Shown piece after piece: positions 28,566-48,800 of a stretch of DNA of 56,870 bases. Source of the stretch: Klebsormidium nitens. Its lineage: Eukaryota > Plantae > Klebsormidiophyceae. A program made the position numbers and the translations under genes. The stretch is from contig DF237050.1 in assembly GCA_000708835.1 (NCBI GenBank), positions 1 through 56,870 of the forward strand, given 5' to 3'. The notes beneath the pieces were generated by a model, which saw only the letters and a list, made by a program, of their open reading frames with translations, was not told the DNA's origin and ran no database searches. Numbering within the stretch: the first letter of the stretch is position 1; every line of letters begins with the position of its first letter.

Positions 28566-31500
28566 CTAAAAGCCGTCCTCAAAGAGCGGAACCCAGCGAT
28601 AGACCACCGAGCGGCAGACGTTACATTCGACGAAGGATGGATTGCCGACCGCCTCCTCCTTGCACGCGGTGCAGAGGCAGCGGTGGCCGCACGGTAACGC
28701 CGCCCACGTCACGCGCCGTTCCCAGCACCTGCGGCAGGCGTTCTCCGGCGGGACACGTGGCGCGCGCGACGGCGGGGGTGCAGGGGCCGCGGCTGGGGGA
28801 GGCTGCAAGAAGGTTGGATTCGAGCGACGTAAGTGGAGGGAGAGAGCTTAGGCCTAAAGATCGGTTGAAGAGGTAGCGAATTCTGTTTCGAACGTGAACA
28901 AAAAGACGGCAGGGCCACTTTACTCATCTTAACAGACTGACACATCGTGGGAAAACTTTCACGGATGGCGCTCTCTCCCTACGGCAATGACACACGAAGG
29001 ATACGCAAAGGCCTATGATATAATGTCGCCAAGCCCGACTATCTTTCATTCAGATCCTTCAGACTACCTCACATGCAAGTCAAAGAGCCCTGGCCAAACC
29101 CCCACGCCTCAATGAAGCTCTGTTTTGTCAACATCTGGAACACTCATCAATTGTTATAGCCCTTCTGTAATCTTACCTTCCAGTCCATGAAAGAGAGGAA
29201 AGAGCGCCCGGTGGGCGCCTCCCGAGCACCAAACGGGGTCCACTCTCGCTCCTGCTCCGGCTGGAAACTCGCCCCGAGGTGCATCCCCGCCTCGCCGTAC
29301 CGGGAGCCCTCCACGAGTGCTCGGCCCGGCGAGATCCCCCCTCCAATTGCCCCCAGACGGCTCTGCAGAACTCCCCCCATGTCCGGAACCGGGCTCTCGG
29401 TGAAAGTCCGTGTGCGCCCATCGGGGGTCAGCGACCGGAAGTCGAACGCGTTCTGCGGGCGGTTGAACTCGCCGCGCCGGTAACGGTCGCCGGGGGGTGC
29501 TCCCGGGGCGTTGGGCTGGCGGAGCAGGTGGTCGAAGTTCTGGGGGCGCAGCGGGCTCGGGGAACCGGTGTACGGCGACGGGCCCCGCGAGGGGGGGTGC
29601 GGGGCCGGGCTACGGCGCCCGGGGATAAGGCCCGGGTGCTGGGCCATCCGCTGGAGCATCATCTTGTGCTCGAACATCTCCCGGTCGATCTCGTGCGGCG
29701 ACCGGGGGCTGTTGAAGAGCTGCCGGGCGGCCGCCCCAAGCGAAAGCTCCCGGTGGATATCGTCGGGGGGGAACGCATCGGGCGTCGGGCTGCCCAGGTA
29801 GAACTCGCGGTCCTCCTTCCGGAAACCAAACCCGGGCGGAACCTGGAGCGCTTCCGGGGCGGAACGCCGACCCGGGAAACCAAAGGGATCCCCCGACGTG
29901 GGCTCCGTTGAGTTGCCCCGGGCGGTCGAGTTGGGTGTCGGGGTAGGGGGAAGCGGGGTGAAGGCTGTCAGAAGGCTGCTCGGGGGCCCCTCCGACAGGT
30001 CCGGCGTGCTCGGGAAGGGTTTGGTTGCGGGGCTGGCGGAAGGGGGGGTCATTTCGCCTGCCTTGAGATCCCCCCCGGTGGATTCCGCAGCCTGTTCCTC
30101 TGTGGGCTGCTCCGCTGGAAGTTCCGGCGAGTCCGCTTCCGTTTCGCCCAGCTCCTCTGTTCCGTTCGGCTCCTCCACGTTTTCGTCCGCGTCTCCCTTT
30201 TCCTCAGGGACGGCTTCCGGCTCGGGAGCTTCCGTTCGCTTCTCGGAAACTGGTTCCGACTCCTCCCCTTCCTTGCTTGGCCCCTTGTCCCCCTGCGCGG
30301 CCGACGCGTACGACCGCCCGGAGGAGACGAACTTGGTCGGGGGTTTGGGCGGCGGCGGCGGCGCGGCCGCGCGCGGCGAGCGCGGCATGAGGACCACGTG
30401 GGTGGAGGCGCCCGTCCCGGTGGGCACGATCTTCATCTTGACGACGTCGGGCATGGAGCGCAGGAAGTCGCTCAGCTTCACGAAGCCCAGCTCGTGGTGC
30501 GGGATCTCTAGCCCGAAGCACGCGCGGAAGTCGCCCTTGAGCGACGACATAGCGTATTGGACGCCGCGCTTGGTGGAGAGGTAACCGGGCAGCCACTGGC
30601 GCAGCTTCACCAGCCAGGGCGGGCACTTGACGCTCCCGGGGATCGCGACCGGAGGCGGGGGCGACGCTTCGAGCGCCGGTGGAGTTTGCTCGGGGGACGT
30701 CACGCGACCGTTGGGTTCGTCACTCGTTTCCGTCGGGTGGGTTTCCGTTCCGGTCGCGGACAGGGGCGGGGCGTCGAGGGGTTTGGCGAGGGCCGGTGGT
30801 TTCTGCCACGGCGACTGGAGGCGCTTCTCCTCCCAGCTGTTGACTTCCCAGGGCACCGGCTCTGGCGAAGGCGCGGCCGCGGCCGCGGCCGCGCGGGCGA
30901 GGCTGACGGGGTTTGGGACGTGCCGGGAGGTCAGTCGTTCCGACTCCGGCGAGCTCATTCCGTCTGCGGGGCTTTCCGGAATGCGAACGAGGACGGAAGC
31001 GGGGGTGTCTGGGGTTTTGCATTCGGGGGGTTCCTCCCAGACGAGGGAGTCGGGTCGTGGAACGGCCGCCTTCACTTCCACCTGGAGACAAGGAAACGGA
31101 GGAGAGGAAGTGTTGGCAGCTGTACTTTGGTAGAAGCAGATATTCGAGCAGCTGCTGAGCCGGATTATGGAGCTGGAAACGGCCTTTCTGCAGAAGCCTT
31201 TAAGAGATTGCGAACTTTTCCAGCGTCAATGGATAAAATTTTGGTTTGTGTGCCGAAATTTGAGGAAAATTCAACAGTTGGACATACCAATCTTCTTCAC
31301 ATATCCACACAGTCTCCTCATTTCGTGACTTCAGGGTAGACAGGCTCGTCCTGATCCTAGCTCCAGCTATCAGCGTGATGCTATTGGACCATAGTGCAGA
31401 TCTCCGTATCAGGCCTCACCTTTTTGCCGAATATGACCACGTAGTGTTGCCTGCAGGCCTTCTGCGCTGTGACCTCGCTCTTGAAGGCGACGAAGCCAAA

Positions 31501-34500
31501 GCCGCGGGAGTGCATCCCGGTCGCCGTCTGAGACCCGATCACGATCGCGTCGTCAACGGGGCCGAAGTTGGATTCGAAGTACTCCTTCAGGTCATCTGCA
31601 GGGTTCGAGAAAAAGATAATTTGAATCGACGAGGAGATTCTTGGCATAAATGTAGCGTTCAGAAGCGCTTCAAAGCTGTAGTCGGTCAAACAGGAAATAA
31701 GGGACACGAGAAGCAGCGCTCTGTGACACCCAAAGAAAGTCGGGTTTACCAACGACTCAGGATAGAGACCCTTTTGACCGAAAAGGATAGTGGTTCGTTG
31801 GAAAAAGAGGCAAAAGTGAAACTCTATAACGATAGAAAGTTTCCTTCCCTCAAAGCTCTGACTTACCAGCGTCAGCAGATTCGGGCAGGCCACCGACGAA
31901 AATCTTGCGGTTGAAGTCCTCGGTCTTCCACTGCTGCAAAAAGAGACAGTAAGCTGTGCGTTCAGAGTGGTTAACCGGGCCAAAAATAAAGCAAGCTTAG
32001 AGACTCGATAGTGTAACGGATTGGCAGAAGAAAATATGAAGGTTCTCGGTCACCAACCACACTAGAACTTCAGAGTTTCGAATGCAAGAGAATCTCTTCT
32101 GGAGTCACGCACGGCACAGAAATGTGGAACGCCCCTTTCAGCGGTAATGAACCATTATTGCTCTCAATACCAATCCCAAAAGTGACATCGCTATGGACAG
32201 GTCCAACGCGCTCAAACGTCAACAGAACGCGCCAGGATGATTATGCACGAACGGCTCAGAAGGCTCATGCAAGGTCGCAGCAGCAAATGCACTTTCACGA
32301 CTTGCCTTGAGCTTCTGCCGGGAGAGGCTGCCCGGCTCCGCCGCATCGCCCAGCATGCCCTTTGGCGGCGCCAGGGGGACCAGCTCGTGTTCCCCGTGCG
32401 CGAAGAAGCACTTTTCGCCGCGCGCGCACCCGTGCGCGGTCCCAAAGTAGCGGCAGAGCTCGGTCTTCGCGTTGGAGGGCATCATGACCGTCTTGGCGGA
32501 AGAGGGCCTCCTGGCAAGAACGAAAAAGTGGGCGAGGAAATTGCTTGGATCATTACTGAAGTCGGTGAGGACCTGTAAGGCTGGATGTTCCAGTTCGATT
32601 ACGGTTCCATCCCAGAATGTCCGCGAAACGAATTCTGTGGTAGAAGGGACCCTCAAGATTGTCGAAGCTTTTTAAGGGACTTCGAAGCACTTGAAACAAG
32701 GTTCACAAGGCCAGTCTTGAGAAATCTTAACGGCATGTATGAACAGTGCTCGCGAGGTCTTCTGCAACATTTTCTCAAATCCAGATCAATGTTTCTGCTC
32801 CGTAGGAGTTCTACTTTGCACACGACGTCTAGAGGCTGAAACCGCCCAAAAAACACACTTTGACATATCTGATGTACACTTACGTCTGGTCGCCCTCCTT
32901 GGTGCCTTTCTTGGCCGCCTCGACGGCTTCAGCGAGCACGTTGTCTTTTCCTGCGCACATGAGAAGCGGCGTTACAATTCACCCCTGTTTTCCTAAAATT
33001 GTGTGGAAGATCAAAAACTTCTTCGAGAAGCACACCAAGCCTCATCAGATGGTACAGGAGTTCCGCAGACGCGGTAGGCAGCAAATAGAGATTACGAACG
33101 TCGTCAGCTACAGCTTCGTGACATCCCTCACGTAAAACTGCGGTGCCGGACACAGTGCAGCCGTTTCCAAGCCCAGATCAACGCTTCTTTTGTTTGATAT
33201 CTAGCTCAAACCAACTTACTAAAGAGTGAATCAAATACTCGGTGTGGGCCTTTTGAAGATCAAGTGTTACCTGTGAAGGCCTCGTCCGGTTGGCGCAGCA
33301 TCTCGCGCATGGGAGGCGATGTGGCCACGTCAATGGGTCTCTGCTTTCTGCAGTTGTAGAAAAAAGCAGGATTGAGCTCAACTTGAAGGACAGACACATC
33401 AACTGGGAGCACTTTAGAAATCTGCTTCTTCGTCAGCACGAATGACCGGAAACTCGCCACTCGGATCGAACAAATTACAGCTCCCCCGTCATAAATAGGA
33501 CAGGCGAACCTTATACTTGCCATCAGGAAACTGAGTGAAGTGCGTTCGGGAAGTCCACTTGGTTTTTGAATTGAAAAGGGCGCACGGAAAAATGGAAAAT
33601 TGCCCGGAGCGTACCTGAGGTTGACCAGCAGTCTGTTCGCGCCAGCCTGCAGCAGCAGCCTGGCGCACTCCACGTGGTCATTCTTGACGGCCCAGAAAAT
33701 GGCGGTCTCCTTGGTTGCGGCCACAATGTTCACGGCCGCAGGCTCCTTGGTCAGCAGGATCTGAAGATGAAGCAGGCCCACGTGTCAGCAAAAGGCAGTG
33801 CTTTAGGCAAAGGCGAAACCCACAAAGCGAGAGAAGTTACATGGTGACAAGAAGCAGCCGCATCCTAAACTAGGGCACTAAGATGCTCCAAATCTGGATG
33901 CCCTGGAAGATTGGTCGCTTTGAACAAATTGCCTCTACGATCAGCGAGAATTTTCTAGCAAGAGCGGGTCAAATCTCACTTAAAGATAGGCTTGACCTAG
34001 AGTCTCCGTCTAAAAAAGTGCTCGTCCAAAGAAGTTTCAGTGCAAGAAAAGGTAAGGAAGCCAACCTTGAGAGCCTCGTAGTGCCCATGAGCGGCCGCCA
34101 CGTGAATTGCTGTGGCGCCGATCTTATTTCCGATGGATCCGCGCGCACCGCCGTCGCTCAGCTGCTGGATGATGCTGCAAGGGTGAGTTGAAATAGCTCA
34201 AGCATCTGTCAGATCAAAGACAGAGAGACGGAGGCAGAGGAATGCAGGATGCCCGACAAAGGCACAGGAAATATTATGCATACTTCAGCAGAAGAAAACC
34301 AACGGTCAGCTGGTAAGAGGTCTCCTTTTTGAACAAATACAAGTAAGTGGCGCAGCAGTTTCAGCAAGTATTAGGAGGCGTGGACCCTGGGACCGGTTCT
34401 CGGAGCGTATGATCGGCGCACCTGACGTTCAGAAGGTTCTTCCCAAGTCGCAGGCACCAGTGAAGAGCAGTGTTGCCGTCTGGATCAGCCTCGTTGGGAT

Positions 34501-36905
34501 CGGACCCGAAGCGCAGCAGCAGGGCTACAAGAGCCTCGTCGTTAGCCTGCACAATTGCAGTGCCTGCTGCGTCAGCCCAGCTTTTTGCTGGAAGATATCT
34601 CGCACTGAAGCTTGTTCAACTCAATCTGGAATTCGAGAGAGATCCATCTCTGCTACAAAACCGTCTGCTGTGATCAAAACCTTCGCTGATGTGCGGCTCA
34701 AAGACAGTCCGAGAAGTATCACTTTCTGACTATATTGACAAACAAGTGCTCTGATCAAACATGAACACGTGGCGTCAAGCGAACAAATTTCTGAAGGACA
34801 CAAAAAGGATATTGATTCTTGAAGGGGCATCCACCTGTGCGGCCTTGATCAGCGGCGCTGTGGGCCCCTTGGAGAGCGGCCCAAACCCCTTCGGCCGGTC
34901 GTTCTTCCGCCGGCTCAGGTGCGGCTTCCACCTCAGCACGGCCTCCAGCACCCGGAGCACGGGCGCGCGCGCGCGCGGCCCGCCCTCCGGGTTTTCGCGT
35001 GCCTGCGCGAGCGCCTTTTGCACCAGGAAGTCGACGACGGTGCCCTCGCCGAAGTCTGGGTGTTGCAGGACGGTGTTCATGATGGCCTTGCCGAAGTGGA
35101 TGTAGAGCGAGATGAGGGGGACGAGCTTGCACGCGAGCGCCAGCTCGCAGCCGAAGCGCGCGAGGTCCTTCATCTGGTTGCCGAGCAGCTTGATGGCTGT
35201 CAGGTCCTGCGGAGGGACCAACGCATACAGGTGGGTTTAGAAGTGAGCTGGTGGCCAATCTGGGGCTGCCATAGATTGTGACACCAGCAGAATGCAGCAC
35301 AACCGACTGGCAATCCTTAATTGGCAATCCTTAAGGGCTGCAAGGCCTGGGGTCTAACGCCTGTCTGAGAACAGAACAGGCTGGTCTCTAAAATGGAGCT
35401 TGCACAGTACTTCTGAAACCCATTAAATGCAGGATCATGAGGTGTTTTTGCAATCAGCTACGAAGGATTGTCAACGTGTCTTGGGGGACGAATTTGTCAA
35501 AATTGAAAGAAAACTTCACTTTTTTCTGAAGAAATAACTTGAGAACTCCTTACCATCTCCTGTAGCTTGATAACAACGTCTCTAGGAGGTGCATGATCTA
35601 CGTCCAGGGGAGGCCTGCACAGGTGAAATATGATTCAATGCATCAATCTACACATGAAACTGGTGGAGTATGCTTCTCGCGGACATTGCAGGCCATAAAT
35701 GGAACAAGCAAGTGACGCTTCAAAAACGTATGCTGTGAAGGTGTTTTAGAAAAAGGCTAAAAGAGGGCTCAGATGATCGATCCAATCCGAATTATCAAAC
35801 TGTCAAAGGACTTCATCTGAATTTCAGGCAGAATCTCTCAAGATCCACCTATTTCTTCTACATGATCTGGATCTTTTAAGATGTGTATTAACGAAGAGAA
35901 TTGTCTCTCAAATTACCATCTCTCTCCAGCACAAAGAAAACCTCGTTCCTAATCCCTTCTACAAATGGCTACCACCCATCAAGATAGACACTTGCCCTCA
36001 CAGCACCTTCATAAACTGGATCTCTTTATCTCTACTCTAATTCAAAGGCATGAAACCCAGCCAGAGCATCCAATGCACAATCCCATCTTTGCACAGAAAC
36101 CTCACCTAAGGCTCTGCATGGCAGATTCCAGAGGAGTACACCCTCTGTCGTCTTCGAGATCAACCTTGGCCCTCCTCTTTATGAGAAGCTCGATGCACTC
36201 CAGGCTGTGGCACTCAGCAGCATGGCGGAGAGCTGTCCTCCCCCTCTCATCACAGTCGTCAATGGGAATCGCTGGAAGACTTGAGCAGTCGAGAAGCATC
36301 TCAGCCACATGCACGGCATCGCATCTGCACGCTTCGTGCAGGAGCTGCCTCAGCAAGGCCTCGTTAGACCTCCGGTCTTCTGTCCTGTCAGAGCTGATGA
36401 GATCGAGCAGCGCCGCAGAGAGAGCTTTTGGCTGGTCCTTTTGGACCAGCTTGGAGAGTTTATCCATCAGGCCTGCGGAAAGGACCTTCTTTCCGCTCGG
36501 ATGCAGGATCACTCTGGACTTCTCAAGCACCATTTCTTCGTCTTCCTTGGCTTCCGACATTTCTGAAGCACCAGCTGAGTCGACGCTGGTACCAATCTTC
36601 GCCTTCAAGATAGCAACAAGCTGAGCACGATCCAGAGACTGGTTCTTGAGAAGCTCGAGGGTGTTCTTCTGGAGAAGCGATCCAACCATAGATGAGGTCA
36701 CTGCTGGATCATTTGCAGATTGGATCCCAGACCCATCTTGACGAGTATCCTCGGCAGACTCAGATTGATTACTACCTTCCTGCAGCGTGCTCAGGAGGTC
36801 TCCTGCTATTTGCCAAAGAGCTTCGTCTATTGAAAGCTCTTGAGCTTTTGCAAGGGCTTGCGCAGCAGTTTCTGCAGTGCCGATCGATCCTCCTTTCTTG
36901 GTCAT
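28566..36905 (-). CDS. Multidomain protein, ~1448 aa: ankyrin repeats - CCCH zinc finger - RRM - OST-HTH/LOTUS - Pro-rich region - RING-HC
   Basis: 13 exons with consistent phases: 36905-36106, 35614-35554, 35206-34835, 34546-34422, 34174-34066, 33760-33615, 33347-33271, 32950-32884, 32510-32306, 31933-31867, 31595-31420, 31081-29177, 28802-28566 (4347 nt). ANK motifs GRTALRHAA, GNTALHWC, GATAIHVAAAHGH, ETAIFWAVKNDH. CCCH: KTELCRYFGTAHGCARGEKCFFAHGEHEL. RRM: KIFVGGLP...RGFGFVAF. LOTUS: SSLKGDFRACFGLEIPHHELGFVKLSDFLRSMPDVV. RING: CRRC...LPCGHRCLCTAC...CNVCR. Confidence 0.88.
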
Positions 36906-39528: not shown

Positions 39529-42500
39529 CTACTTATCCTCCCTGTTCATTGCGCGGACTCTGATAGGCAGCCCGTACAGCTTGATGAACCCGGCGGCATC
39601 TGCCTGGTCGTAGATGTCGTTGCCCTCCTCGAACGTGGAGATGTCTTCCCGGTACAGGCTGTTGACGCTTCGCCGGCTCGCAACCGAGATGCTCCCCTTG
39701 TACAGCTTCAGCTTGATGGACCCCGTGCAGCACTTGGTGACCTCCGTCACGAACGCGTCGAGCGCCTCGCGCAGCGGGTCGAACCACCGGCCCGCGTACA
39801 CGAGCTCAGCGTACTTGAGGGCTATTTGGTCCTGTCAAAAACGAAGAGAACACTCCGCTGAGAACGAGAAGGAACTGGAAAAGGTTTCTTGTCGCTTTTG
39901 TGACCGTCAGTCCCAGCAGCAGTGCAGACAGCAGAGGCAAAGGTACCTGAAGTGGCGTATTTTCTGCGAAATTTGAATTGGCCCACAACTGAACGACGGT
40001 TTCGAAAGGCTGCCAGGAAGGAAGAGCAACTTCCATTCTACGACCTGCGGAAGCGAACCATTTTCTAAACATGCAGCCCTGACGAGACCGCCAACAAGAC
40101 AGCTCGTAGTGCCCATAAAGAAAAGGCTTGACAGCGGATCAACGTGATGATTGCCCCACGCAGAAACTGCAGACGTTCGTGATACGATGCCCACATCTGG
40201 GCAGCGGACTGCCCACCTCATGCGAGAGCTCAAAACCCCGAAGGGAAAGGTAGCTTACCTTGTACTGCATGGTCTCCCTGTCGAGTGTTAGAGACTCGAG
40301 CTCACGGGCCGCTGCCACTAGGATCGTGCCACCTGGCGTCTCGTATACGCCGCGGCTCTTCATGCCCACCAACCTGCAGGACCACGTCAGTGTCAGTCAA
40401 GAATACGGGACTCATTCGTGGCAAAGGGAAACATGGTGACGAACGAACACTGCGAAAGTGTCACAAGGTTATGGGGACCATCCGAGCAGACGGGCTCCGT
40501 TTGGGTGCCCTTTTCAAGGTGCAAACAGGCTCTTAGAAATCCGGCCTTCAACTTTCCGAAGCTCGTCTGTATGGACGAATGCAACCGGCCGCGATCGCAT
40601 GCAGAAATGACTGACAGAAGCCCTTTCAGTTCGAGCAGCGAAGGGTAAAGTCGCGACGTTGAGTCCAGCCCTGCCGCCCACCTGCTCGCATGCAACCATC
40701 TGCAGAAAACCACCGCGACAACAATCGAAAGCGTCGCGGCCGCTCACCTGTTCTCGACCATGTCGCATCGGCCAATGCCGTGCTTGCCCCCAAGGTCGTT
40801 CAGCTTCGTCAACAGCTGCGCCGGGGAGAGCTTCTCCCCGTTGACACTGACGGGCGTCCCCGACTCAAAGTCGATCTCGACGTACTCGGGAGTGTCAGGA
40901 GCGTCCTCGGGATCCACGGTCAGGACGTACATGTCCTTCTTGGGCTCGTTGGCGGGATCCTCCAACACGTCACCCTGCGATATAGGCAACATTAAAATCA
41001 GGTCAATACGATGACAATCAATCCACGTCCTCTCTCGGGTTCTCACTTAATGTCTTGACAAGAAGGTGGCGACTTGCCTTTCCAAGGACAAACGGCTGAA
41101 TAAGAGGGGAATATAATCACATATGCCAGCCGCAAACTCGGAGCTCGAGTACTATGAGCAAGAGGGCAAGGAAGCAGTCCTATTTGGTCGATTAACGGGC
41201 ACGTTCGCTGAAATGTTTTCCGAACTCGCCAAGGAAGACACCCAGACTCGTTCTAGGACGAGACCCTTTTTGATGCATGCTCATGTCTCAGCAGAACCAA
41301 GTGGGCTTACCTCGTGGCTGATGTGCCACAGGTTGCGGTCGCGGCTGTAGATCGACTTTTTGGTGACTGGGACAGGGATGTTGAACTTCTTGGCGTACTC
41401 GATGGCGTCTTCTCTGCCCTTGATATCCTGCAGAATAAGTTGTAGATGGTTAAGGTACGAATGATCGTCGAGACACGATACTCGCTGTAAGGAGTGTTGT
41501 TCTGTGAACAAACTATCTTTTCAGAGGCTTAGGCCAGCATCTCGCATGCCCCTGCGTATTGAACTCGACTCTATCTGTTCACAAAAGCTAATGAAGCCAG
41601 CGTCGGCGACTTTCCCATCGCGATTTGCACGCGGAAACGACATCATTGCGGGTGCACGTCCAACGGCCTTGTATATGACAGGCGCTACTGCTGACTCTGC
41701 GGAGTTGAGATGAAGAAGAAGGACACCGACTTTGTAGATGGCCGCCTACTCAAAATTCAGAATTCAGAAGAGGGAGGGGAAAGACTCCCCTTACCCACTC
41801 TCTCCAGGGAGCGACGACCTTGAGCGAAGGGTTGAGCGCGAAGAACGTCAGCTCGAAACGGACCTGAAAGAGGGTTCACAAGGAACATGTTCACATTCGC
41901 CTGTCCGTTCAATCGCTCCTGTCCAAGGAAATAAGAGCAACGCAAGCACCAAACCGGATGTATGAATCTGCGGCTTGAATAGCAGGCGCCCAATTCAATG
42001 CTCAAGAAAGAAGGCTCGAAGGCTCGGTGAATGTTCCGCAAATCAAATCCCCATCGAACGAAGCTTGCTGAACGAGCAGAGAAGCATCAATTGGTGACTA
42101 GAGAGAAAAAGCAGGGGACATGTGGAAACTGACCTGATCGTTTCCCTTCCCCGTGCAACCGTGAGCAACAGCATCGGCGCCCACCTCCCGAGCAACGTCG
42201 ACCATGGCCTGAAGAAAAGCAAGCGTTTGAGACACCCTTCGAAGTTCCAAGAACCTCCAATTCATCCCAGGAAAACCCCAAAAGGCCCGTACTTACACCT
42301 TTCCCTCACGTCAGTTTTTGCTCAAGAACGAAATAGTGCTGAAGCAAGGCCGAGACTTCGACGACTTCCCTCCTTATCTCGAAAGCTACATGATCTGCCT
42401 TCTATCCTTTTACTCCTGAACACGGAACAGTGGTGCCTTTCGTCTTCGTTGGTCACGAGAACTTTGGACCGATGCGAGCAGATCCAGGCGAGCCGGAAAT

Positions 42501-45812: not shown

Positions 45813-48800
45813 ATGACGTCGTCTTTGGTCAGGGCTGGGCTGCAGTCTGGGCAGCTATCCCTTAGCAGCTCGCTTGGCCTCCAGCAGCAGACATGCCAGG
45901 GTGCGCCTCAGGCCGCGCTCGTGCGCATGTCTGCCACTCGGCGACCGAGGAGGAGCGCTCCTGCCAGGTCTCTGGAGTCCTTTTCAGGGATGCGGAAGGC
46001 GAGCGTTGTTGATGTCGCAGGGGCTAGGGGTGTACAGTCAGCAGACTTGAGAGCAGCGGTGGCTGCCTCCATGGAGGCTGTGCCTGTGGGGAGGCAGGCT
46101 GGCAGGCGGGGCGAGACAGTGGCCATGTTCGAGCGGTTCACAGAAAAGGCCATCAAGGTTATCATGCTAGCGCAGGAGGAGGCACGGAGGCTAGGGCATA
46201 ACTTTGTTGGAACAGAGCAGATCCTGCTGGGGTTGATTGGCGAGGGCACGGGGATTGCTGCGAAGGTGCTCAAGTCCCTGGGGGTCAACCTTAAGGAAGC
46301 CAGGGTGGAAGTGGAGAAGATCATCGGGCGGGGGAGTGGTTTCGTGGCCGTGGAAATTCCTTTCACTCCAAGGGCAAAGCGGGTGCTGGAGCTGTCCCTG
46401 GAAGAAGCACGCCAACTGGGTAAGCAACCTCCTAGCAATTGAGCAATTGTTATGAGCAGGCTTGATGGCCATCATCCTTGTTCAGAAAGACCATATCCGA
46501 TGCTTTAAGGGTCAAGAAAGTGGTGTGTCGGTGTTTTCTTCCCTGGCCATTACCAGGTGCACATGAGCAACCTACATTTTGCCCTTGAGCTTTTCTTTGC
46601 GTGATTTTTCGCAGTGTAGTCAAGCAATGCTGAGGCTGTTGGCGCCTCTAAGAGCCTCAGAAATGGACAAGAGCTTTGGAACTGGAAAAGAAGGGATTCA
46701 TTAGTAGTCTTCCTAAACTTGAAGCTCCCTGCCGAAGGAGTGTCTTCTGGATATCTGGTCGTGTCTGCTAAGGCAGGCAGTTTCTTAGGGTTGTCTGGGG
46801 CCACTTGTTGTGATTGTTTGCATTCATGGTGTACGTTAAGAATAATTGCTGAGAGTTTGCAATCTTGTTGCAGCAAGAGCACGCAGTGCTTTGCATTTTT
46901 GTCAGAGGTCAGAAGCAAAGACCTGTGAGTCCTCCTCCAGGGTCATGTATGCTTGAGCACCTTGAGATGTGCCTAGTATTGGCCACAGTTTCAGACTTTT
47001 TGAACACCATCCTTTGCAGGCCACAATTACATTGGGACCGAGCACTTGCTTCTTGGGCTGCTTAGAGAAGGGGAGGGCGTCGCTGCCAGAGTGCTGGAGA
47101 ACTTGGGAGCTGACCCTGGCAACATCAGGACACAGGTAGAGATCGGAACCCTTTGAAAAGAAGGTTCGAGACCAATTTGTCATGAGATTGCTACAAAACT
47201 GCTACACTGGTAATGGTTGATCTAGGCTTTTCGGGCGGTTGACTTTCTGGTGACTGTGTGGGCAGGATCTCTTCTAGAAGAGGCTTTGTTCGATCTTCAC
47301 ATATTGTGGCCCGTCTAGTTAGTGCTCAAGCTTCCTTGCAGCTTGATCAATTGCAGGGCCTTTGCTTTTGTAACACCAGGATTTGGTTTGTTGAGATTCA
47401 TATTAAGGGTAGCAATACCTCTTCTGGATGCAAGAATAGCACCAGTTTTGTTTGGTGCAAGAAAATGAGCACGGCGTCTGGCAGCTGACGTGATGCAGCT
47501 GCAGAACAGCGGCTTGCCTGCAAGCAGAGCTGTTGGCATCTCATCTGCAGTGCATCAGAGCAGCACAGCACTGTTTTTGTTTGTGCAGCGATGGTGAAAT
47601 TGGTGTTTGTTGTGCAGCGAAGATGAAAGTGGTGTTTGTTCTGCGATGACGAAAGTGGTGTTTGTTTGTGGAGCAATGATGAAAGTGGTGGTCAACTTTG
47701 CAGGAGCAAGTGGAGGTGGCGGGTTTTCAACTTGATTTGTACTCTGCAGGTCATCCGGATGGTTGGTGAGAGCGCTGAGCCCGCGGTTGGCGTGGGCGCC
47801 GGCGGCGTGTCTGGGAATACCAAGATGCCGACGCTGGAGGAATATGGCACAAACCTGACAAAGCTTGCTGAAGATGTGAGTTGTTGTTGTTTTCGCTGCA
47901 CATGTTCAGTTGCACAGCAGCTGCAGTACTTCTTTGTTCCTTTGAAATAGGGTCTCTTGCTGCAGAGTGGATGAAGAGTGGTCTAGAGTCGGGCACTGAA
48001 TACAGAATTGTTGATTATTATACAGTACGGCACAATGTGATGAAGTCTGTGGTAGGATGCAATGTGTTGCTGCTTCTGTTTCACTGGTCCCACTTTTGAA
48101 AGTGGCGCGGAAGGAAACTCTGGGGCTTTTTGGAGTGCAACACGTCCAGATGGCAAAAGAAGCACTAACGAGGACTCTCGTAGTTCGCTTCTTTGATGTT
48201 CTTGGCATTGAGCAATTCTGTGGCAGAAAGCTTTTTTGGTTCTTAGCGATGTACTAGCTGCTTTGCTTGGAGCAAGCACTTGGTACAGTTGTTCTCCAGC
48301 CATATGTTCCGCTCTGTATCTCTCTGCTGGCGCCTAGTATGCACTTCCTTGGTTGTGTAGGGTTTCTCTTTGAGCAGCTGTTAGACAAAAGTTAGGCACC
48401 TCTGCATCAGCAGATCGTTGTCACTACATTTCAACTACTAATTAGTCAAAGCTCGCCTTCAATTGTGCTTTTAGCTACCTTTTTCAATGCAGTATACTGT
48501 GGTGGAGTGTTTTCTGGTCACAGATGATCCATCCGCGCTGCACTTTTCCCTCACCTAAGTTACAAATGCCTACTGCACTATACGTTGCACTTCCTCTTAG
48601 CAAATCAAAACCCTCTTGCTTGCAGGGCAAGCTTGACCCTGTGGTAGGCAGGCAGCCCCAGATTGAGCGTGTCACCCAGATCCTCGGCAGGCGTACGAAG
48701 AACAACCCTTGCCTGATTGGCGAGCCCGGTGTCGGAAAGACCGCCATTGCTGAGGGGCTGGCTCAGAGGATTGCCTCAGGAGACGTTCCCGAGACAATTG

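Follow-up and report, generated by a model that had tools for sequence, protein, structure and literature searches.

The DNA analysed here, referred to as the window, is a stretch of 56,870 nucleotides (nt) of the alga Klebsormidium nitens (contig DF237050.1). On its minus strand, from position 36905 to position 28566, lies a single gene with 13 exons and 12 in-phase introns, which was rebuilt from conserved sequence blocks and splice sites. The exons sum up to 4347 nt, i.e., 1448 codons and a stop codon. In the list of open reading frames (ORFs) the coding parts are present only as scattered minus-strand fragments between positions 28566 and 36905. The domains encoded by the gene and its similarity to known proteins indicate with high probability that it is a 13-exon member of the streptophyte MEL2-like (MEL2L) family, with the layout ankyrin repeats (ANK), C3H1 zinc finger, RRM, LOTUS domain, disordered spacer, and RING.

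Pfam was used to find domains in the open frames of the minus strand. Ankyrin repeats (Ank/Ank_2) were detected in three frames (36102-36905, 34361-34552, and 33260-33781). They are followed by a zf-CCCH finger in frame 32219-32656, an RRM_1 domain in frame 31381-31983, an OST-HTH domain in the 644-codon frame 29147-31081 (E 1.8e-8), and a zf-C3HC4_3 domain in frame 28566-28808 (E 1.3e-9). Thus, ANK, CCCH, RRM, OST-HTH/LOTUS and a C-terminal RING reside in separate exons. An earlier interpretation made from the letters alone, the sequence-only reading, had named these five domains in exactly this order and had proposed that 12 in-phase introns join them into one chain of about 1448 amino acids, which the ORF track shows only in fragments. 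Both the order of the domains and the single chain were confirmed.

The exon structure was derived by comparison with two related contigs. When the LOTUS part of exon 12 was used as query in a word-index protein search, only two close relatives were obtained, both single-exon gene calls from samples of the Joint Genome Institute (JGI). The respective contigs, L001 and L002, are labelled as metagenomic (JGI samples 3300060285 and 3300060284) and are 62 kb and 86 kb long; their source is evidently a Klebsormidium-like alga. The region of the window was compared with both contigs using blastn, and GT/GC-AG pairs that keep the frames open were then enumerated at the block edges. The comparison revealed 13 conserved blocks separated by DNA that could not be aligned, as expected for exons and introns. 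Exon 12, the largest block, was split into two blastn pieces that flank a diverged middle part. The enumeration yielded one splice pair with strong consensus sites for each junction. All 12 junctions recur at equal positions in the two contigs, where they have canonical sites, and the exon lengths are either equal or differ by multiples of three. Searches, family scans and structure predictions were run exon by exon, and junction peptides of up to about 40 residues (most of them below 25) were translated to control phase and stop codons.

The gene of the two contigs has the same 13-exon structure, and the nucleotide identity in the conserved exon blocks is 68-89%. The existing gene calls on both contigs are prokaryote-style single exons. 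The ratio of non-synonymous to synonymous substitution rates (dN/dS) was calculated pairwise between the window and L001 or L002 with the NG86 method, and it was between 0.0 and 0.3 for each exon from exon 2 to exon 13. By this measure, purifying selection was shown on every exon. The LOTUS domain is identical in the three algal copies, and the spacer is variable and contains insertions and deletions (indels).

Exon 1 (36106..36905, 800 nt, ending in phase 2) starts with an ATG at 36905 and encodes the N-terminus, which is not conserved, followed by the first ankyrin block. Pfam detected Ank_2/Ank at residues 189-264, and residues 149-265 were aligned by hhalign to columns 67-186 of the family profile described below (E 1.2e-17). 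The donor is GTGAGG in the window and GTAAGC in L001 and L002. The ATG at 36905 is the first one of the open frame, and the first about 70 codons lack conservation, so that an additional upstream exon may exist. Exon 2 (35554..35614, 61 nt) is a block of 86% nucleotide identity with the same length and the same AG/GT sites in L001 and L002, and its dN/dS does not exceed 0.02. Exon 3 (34835..35206, 372 nt) encodes a helical region that is specific to the family and lies between the ankyrin blocks. No family was matched by it in the Pfam scan; hhalign placed it on columns 210-343 (E 3.1e-11), the nucleotide identity to L001 and L002 is 85-87%, and dN/dS is about 0.1.

The next four exons complete the ankyrin region. 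Exon 4 (34422..34546, 125 nt) encodes an ankyrin repeat that was detected by Pfam (Ank/Ank_4) and by hhalign (columns 344-379, E 2.4e-15). Exon 5 (34066..34174, 109 nt) also encodes an ankyrin repeat, as indicated by an ankyrin-like motif in the translation; it is a block of 87-89% nucleotide identity, and length and splice sites are kept in L001 and L002. Another repeat is encoded by exon 6 (33615..33760, 146 nt; Pfam Ank; hhalign columns 422-469, E 3.3e-20), which has a dN/dS of about 0.01. Exon 7 (33271..33347, 77 nt), the end of the ankyrin region, is a conserved block with the same length and sites in both relatives, and it has zero non-synonymous changes versus either of them. Exon 8 (32884..32950, 67 nt) is a conserved block that encodes a short linker. 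It has 70 nt in L001 and L002, and this difference of 3 nt leaves the phase unchanged.

The putative RNA-binding part starts with exon 9 (32306..32510, 205 nt), which encodes a zinc finger with the spacing C-x8-C-x5-C-x3-H (Pfam zf-CCCH/zf-CCCH_4; hhalign columns 536-572, E 1.4e-15). The intron that follows (window 32300-32306) is of the GC-AG type with the donor AAG/GCAAGT, and a GT donor is found at the same position in L001 and L002. Exon 10 (31867..31933, 67 nt) encodes the first part of the RRM, with a KIFVGGL-type RNP2 motif in the translation, 86% nucleotide identity, and conserved length and sites. The main part of the RRM with RNP1 is encoded by exon 11 (31420..31595, 176 nt; Pfam RRM_1; hhalign columns 600-657, E 1.5e-25, 59% identity). 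Exon 12 (29177..31081, 1905 nt) completes the RRM and further encodes the LOTUS/OST-HTH domain (about residues 150-235 of the exon) and a spacer of about 400 residues that is rich in Pro, Glu and Ser. In addition to the Pfam match to OST-HTH, residues 150-261 were aligned to columns 742-866 of the profile (E 5.2e-27). A complete RRM with RNP2 and RNP1 appears only when exon 10, exon 11 and the start of exon 12 are joined, and, thus, these junctions are independently supported.

The spacer between LOTUS and RING is the sole part of the gene with many indels. A tandem peptide repeat of the SHRLSGxD type is present in two to three copies in the spacers of both relatives (L001:9995-11956, L002:9995-11950), and it is absent from the window.

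The last exon, exon 13 (28566..28802, 237 nt including the stop codon), encodes a C-terminal C3HC4 RING of the IAP/MUL1/MEX3C type. The junction from 29177 to 28802, which had also been proposed in the sequence-only reading, was recovered in phase 0 with the sites GTAAGA...TTGCAG. Nevertheless, it was considered that the RING exon could lie outside of the main product, either as a separate downstream gene or because the usual transcript ends after exon 12 and encodes an ANK-CCCH-RRM-LOTUS protein without a RING, similar to those of Chara and Amborella. Indeed, family members without a RING exist, and the length of intron 12 differs, with about 375 nt in the window (28803-29176) versus about 1170 nt in L001 (11957-13130) and L002. 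On the other hand, the open frame of the RING holds no ATG and therefore cannot start a protein by itself, and both relatives share the acceptor of the RING exon and its phase as well as the donor that follows exon 12. In addition, the dN/dS of the RING exon is 0.27 and 0.20 over 76 codons for the two comparisons. The encoded RING is of the family's own C-terminal subtype: it was aligned to columns 1100-1151 of the 1177 profile columns (E 5.6e-13), and it shares 50% identity with the RING at the end of the Closterium homologue. A product without the RING is therefore regarded as highly improbable. A separate gene for the RING would be very unlikely in view of this comparison, and it was rejected because of the missing ATG, the conserved acceptor and the family-specific subtype of the RING.

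To place the gene in a family, an exhaustive HMMER search was performed with a LOTUS piece of 196 residues (window:30287-30874, minus strand) as query. It yielded 122 matches at E<=1e-3, 85 of them at E<=1e-10. The matches that were looked up all carried the name of a streptophyte organism or no name. When 18 matches were scanned with Pfam, nine long proteins with the layout ANK-(CCCH)-RRM-LOTUS-(RING) were found. All five domains are present in a protein of the gymnosperm Cryptomeria japonica (XP_057871357.1, P0004). ANK-RRM-LOTUS-RING was detected in the fern Ceratopteris, the lycophyte Diphasiastrum, Magnolia (with two RINGs) and the zygnematophyte alga Closterium sp. (CAI5468373.1, P0009), and CCCH-RRM-LOTUS-RING in Sphagnum. 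In the proteins of Ceratopteris and Magnolia a CCCH motif was additionally found by a regular expression. Chara braunii and Amborella have ANK-CCCH-RRM-LOTUS without a RING, and these are the exceptions that are named in the MEL2 preprint. An ESM Atlas look-up with the LOTUS part returned only generic LOTUS clusters with scores below 0.9.

The layout of these proteins is that of a published family. The consensus of MEL2-like proteins is ANK-ZINC(C3H1)-RRM-LOTUS-RING, it occurs in several angiosperm families, and the consecutive RRM-LOTUS pair is the stated core of the family, which is found in land plants and in Chara (bioRxiv 10.1101/2021.03.24.433842). Chara is the only alga in that study, and its member as well as that of Amborella lack the RING (bioRxiv 10.1101/2021.03.24.433842). 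The founding member, rice MEL2 (LOC_Os12g38460), consists of ANK, RRM, LOTUS, a long disordered spacer and a C3HC4 RING (bioRxiv 10.1101/2021.03.24.433842). A rice paper of 2024 describes MEL2 in the same way and labels the RING only as an E3 ligase domain. PAM1 of maize (PNAS 2026), which belongs to the MEL2 family, combines two ANK regions with one RRM, one LOTUS domain and a pair of zf-C3HC4_3 RINGs at the C-terminus (PMC13187813).

The sequence-only reading had supposed a new architecture and had taken land-plant relatives to be without a terminal RING. Some members from land plants and charophytes do lack the RING, which is the one point in favour of an architecture that had not been seen before. 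Yet the five-domain consensus has been published as the MEL2-like family, PAM1 and MEL2 carry terminal RINGs, and Pfam detected a RING also in the proteins of Cryptomeria, Ceratopteris, Diphasiastrum, Magnolia, Closterium and Sphagnum and in other homologues. Both suppositions were thus refuted, and a previously unseen single-chain architecture has practically no probability left. The sequence-only reading itself had listed an already characterised family as an outcome that would refute it, and this is the case here.

The assignment to the MEL2-like family was supported by a family profile (A2), which was built from an alignment of 13 full-length matches and compared with single exons by hhalign. 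Eight exons (exons 1, 3, 4, 6, 9, 11, 12 and 13) are colinear on the profile with E-values from 3e-11 to 5e-27, and exons 3 and 4 adjoin in the profile columns, as they do in the spliced model. The features of the family are all present, i.e., N-terminal ANK, a C3H1 finger between ANK and RRM, the RRM-LOTUS pair, and a C-terminal C3HC4 RING after a long spacer. The presence of the LOTUS domain argues against the outgroup of ANK-ZINC-RRM proteins that lack LOTUS. None of the HMMER matches was labelled MEL2 or PAM1, so that the link to recognised MEL2L proteins was made by features and not by label. An Oryza cluster (RSSG8 / OsI_38941) was among the matches. A further match, from Leersia perrieri (P0051), has domain coordinates near those published for PAM1 and, at about residues 856-896, PVPTRKP-type repeats like the proline-rich tandem repeats of the MEL2 spacer. 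These repeats mark it as a protein of the grass MEL2/PAM1 type.

The LOTUS domain was modelled with AlphaFold, and the predicted local distance difference test (pLDDT) score was above 90 over the domain. The model consists of helices and a beta-hairpin, no helix follows the hairpin, and the chain is disordered beyond it. The best matching folds in the PDB were the LOTUS domains of TDRD7, Tejas, TDRD5 and Oskar. A terminal helix after the hairpin separates the minimal LOTUS domains from the extended ones, which bind Vasa-type helicases. Because this helix is missing in the model, binding of a DEAD-box helicase appears less likely than binding of CCR4-NOT or of RNA, which is reported for PAM1 and for MARF1-type LOTUS domains. 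The sequence-only reading had named DEAD-box helicases and RNA as known ligands of LOTUS domains in germ-granule proteins.

Functional data are available for the two grass proteins. PAM1 binds ASY1 through ANK and CCR4-NOT through LOTUS, and it has a role in the splicing of meiotic transcripts (PMC13187813). Rice MEL2 is part of RNA granules in the cytoplasm, and these granules associate with processing bodies (P-bodies) and stress granules (bioRxiv 10.1101/2021.03.24.433842). When the RING of MEL2 was present by itself in rice protoplasts, it gave granule-like foci, whereas its deletion led to a more diffuse signal, and the spacer is involved in granule formation and affects granule size and stability (bioRxiv 10.1101/2021.03.24.433842). 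By analogy, the CCCH finger and the RRM of the algal protein would bind target mRNAs, and the LOTUS domain would recruit an RNA-processing partner, which is CCR4-NOT in the case of PAM1. The ankyrin region would dock on a protein partner, the role that the axis protein ASY1 has for PAM1, and the disordered spacer together with the RING would help to assemble the protein into RNA granules of the cytoplasm, as they do in MEL2. In addition, the RING may ubiquitinate granule proteins or RNA-bound proteins, an activity suggested only by its likeness to active C-terminal RINGs.

The RING was analyzed for features of active ubiquitin ligases (E3). Exon 13 retains the eight zinc ligands in C3HC4 spacing, as do both relatives. 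Among solved chains, those of cIAP2, cIAP1, XIAP, MUL1, CGRRF1 and the RNA-binding ligase MEX3C are the closest. The Arg directly after the last Cys, which is the linchpin position of active RINGs, is retained. A conserved aromatic tail, in which a Trp follows the last Cys at a distance of four to seven residues, forms the end of the protein, here and also in several homologues.

Several points weigh against the interpretation as a MEL2-like protein that acts in the proposed way. The splicing of exon 12 to exon 13 is deduced from comparative evidence, and the protein may stand next to the MEL2L clade instead of within it. Each functional step is transferred from grasses, and a very long time separates these from Klebsormidium. 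No sexual cycle is known to have been described for Klebsormidium, and, thus, a meiotic role may not apply. Lastly, two positions that contact the ubiquitin-conjugating enzyme (E2) in IAP RINGs are not conserved, with C-R-R-C in place of C-x-V/I-C and C-N-V-C in place of C-P-x-C. Compared to cIAP2, the window has Arg for Val and Asn for Pro, and the relatives L001 and L002 have Lys or Gln, and Asn, at these positions. The altered E2-contact residues weaken the reading of the RING as an E3.

These residues would also fit to a MEL2-like member in which the RING is a non-catalytic module for assembly or interaction in RNA granules. Further points in favour of such a module are the behaviour of the isolated and of the deleted MEL2 RING in rice protoplasts described above, and the wording of the two studies, since "ubiquitin" and "ligase" are absent from the main text of the PAM1 paper (PMC13187813) and "ubiquitin" is absent from the MEL2 preprint (bioRxiv 10.1101/2021.03.24.433842). 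Against it stand the retained zinc ligands and the Arg after the last Cys, the C-terminal aromatic tail, which resembles that of dimeric RINGs of the IAP/MDM2 type, the purifying selection on the RING exon, and the fact that the closest solved relatives including MEX3C are all active E3s. Taking both sides into account, a non-catalytic RING is a serious possibility, albeit not the one that we favour. The sequence-only reading had proposed that the protein couples recognition of RNA or of granules of RNA and protein to ubiquitination. The link between granule and RING fits to the published behaviour of rice MEL2, and the coupling to ubiquitination is the part that is weakened by the altered E2-contact residues.

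The MEL2-like protein of the window was also compared with individual known systems. It shares with the MEL2L family and rice MEL2 the domain order of the consensus, the long disordered spacer between LOTUS and RING, and colinear homology over the eight exons. It differs from rice MEL2 in that the latter has no CCCH finger and has proline-rich tandem repeats in the spacer, which are absent from the window; in addition, MEL2 acts before meiosis and in a flowering plant. The order of ANK, RRM, LOTUS and C-terminal zf-C3HC4_3 RING is also that of maize PAM1, but the latter has two RINGs and no CCCH finger, and its partners as well as its role in meiotic-transcript splicing are described for the maize protein. 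The proteins of Closterium and Cryptomeria are the nearest full-length relatives found, and both are uncharacterised database entries. They have 1125-1189 amino acids versus 1448 amino acids in the window, and the difference is mostly due to a shorter spacer.

A second group of plant proteins, AtC3H18 and AtC3H18L of Arabidopsis and BcMF30 of Brassica, also combines CCCH, LOTUS and RRM and is found in cytoplasmic messenger ribonucleoprotein (mRNP) granules (PMC9335048). These proteins have no ANK and no RING, they have only about 536 amino acids, and their residue ranges suggest that LOTUS precedes the RRM (PMC9335048). Therefore, the AtC3H18-type CCCH-LOTUS-RRM proteins were rejected as the family of the gene, being far shorter, without ANK and RING, and apparently with a different domain order. 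As for animal proteins, the RING belongs to the same Pfam type as that of MEX3C and matches the solved chain of the latter, and the LOTUS domain resembles those of TDRD7, TDRD5, Tejas and Oskar in its fold. However, MEX3C, Roquin, MARF1, TDRD5/7 and Oskar have KH/ROQ plus RING or LOTUS plus Tudor/NYN, so that the likeness is confined to single domains and does not indicate orthology. The XB3/XBAT proteins of plants have N-terminal ankyrin repeats and a C-terminal RING of the zf-C3HC4_3 type, and they differ from the algal protein by having no CCCH, RRM or LOTUS domain. No XBAT-like layout was found among the domain-scanned matches of the LOTUS-based search, which by its design cannot test relatedness via ANK or RING.

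The kind of protein is not new; what is new is that a complete member with all five domains occurs in a Klebsormidium-type alga. Neither the MEL2 preprint nor the PAM1 paper mentions Klebsormidium, and nothing relevant was found when the literature was searched for this genus in combination with MEL2. The presence of RING-bearing members in a Klebsormidium-type alga and in Closterium points to an ancestral full layout, from which the RING-less forms would have arisen by loss. It is tentatively proposed, as a scenario that is on balance doubtful, that the complete MEL2-like protein with its five domains goes back to the ancestor shared by Klebsormidium-type algae and land plants, at a time when no sporophyte existed and in a lineage for which no sexual cycle is known to have been described. 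Its original job would have been a general one, as an RNA-guided, granule-resident RING ligase or as a CCR4-NOT adaptor, e.g., under stress. The meiotic timing in grasses would have been added later, and the RING-less forms of Chara and Amborella would be secondary losses.

The full layout would thus be older than the RING-less form of Chara implies, which is a modest phylogenetic extension. The gene adds a data point to a family that has genetic weight in crops, as exemplified by rice MEL2 and maize PAM1. It also offers a simpler filamentous alga in which the role of the family outside of meiosis could be addressed, together with the question of whether its RING really acts as an RNA-coupled ubiquitin ligase.

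The neighbourhood of the gene was inspected by eye. ORF fragments that resemble argininosuccinate synthase are found at 39529-41046 on the minus strand, and a frame that resembles the N-terminus of a ClpC-type chaperone is found at 45813-46442 on the plus strand. Both are ordinary genes that are unrelated to the MEL2-like gene.

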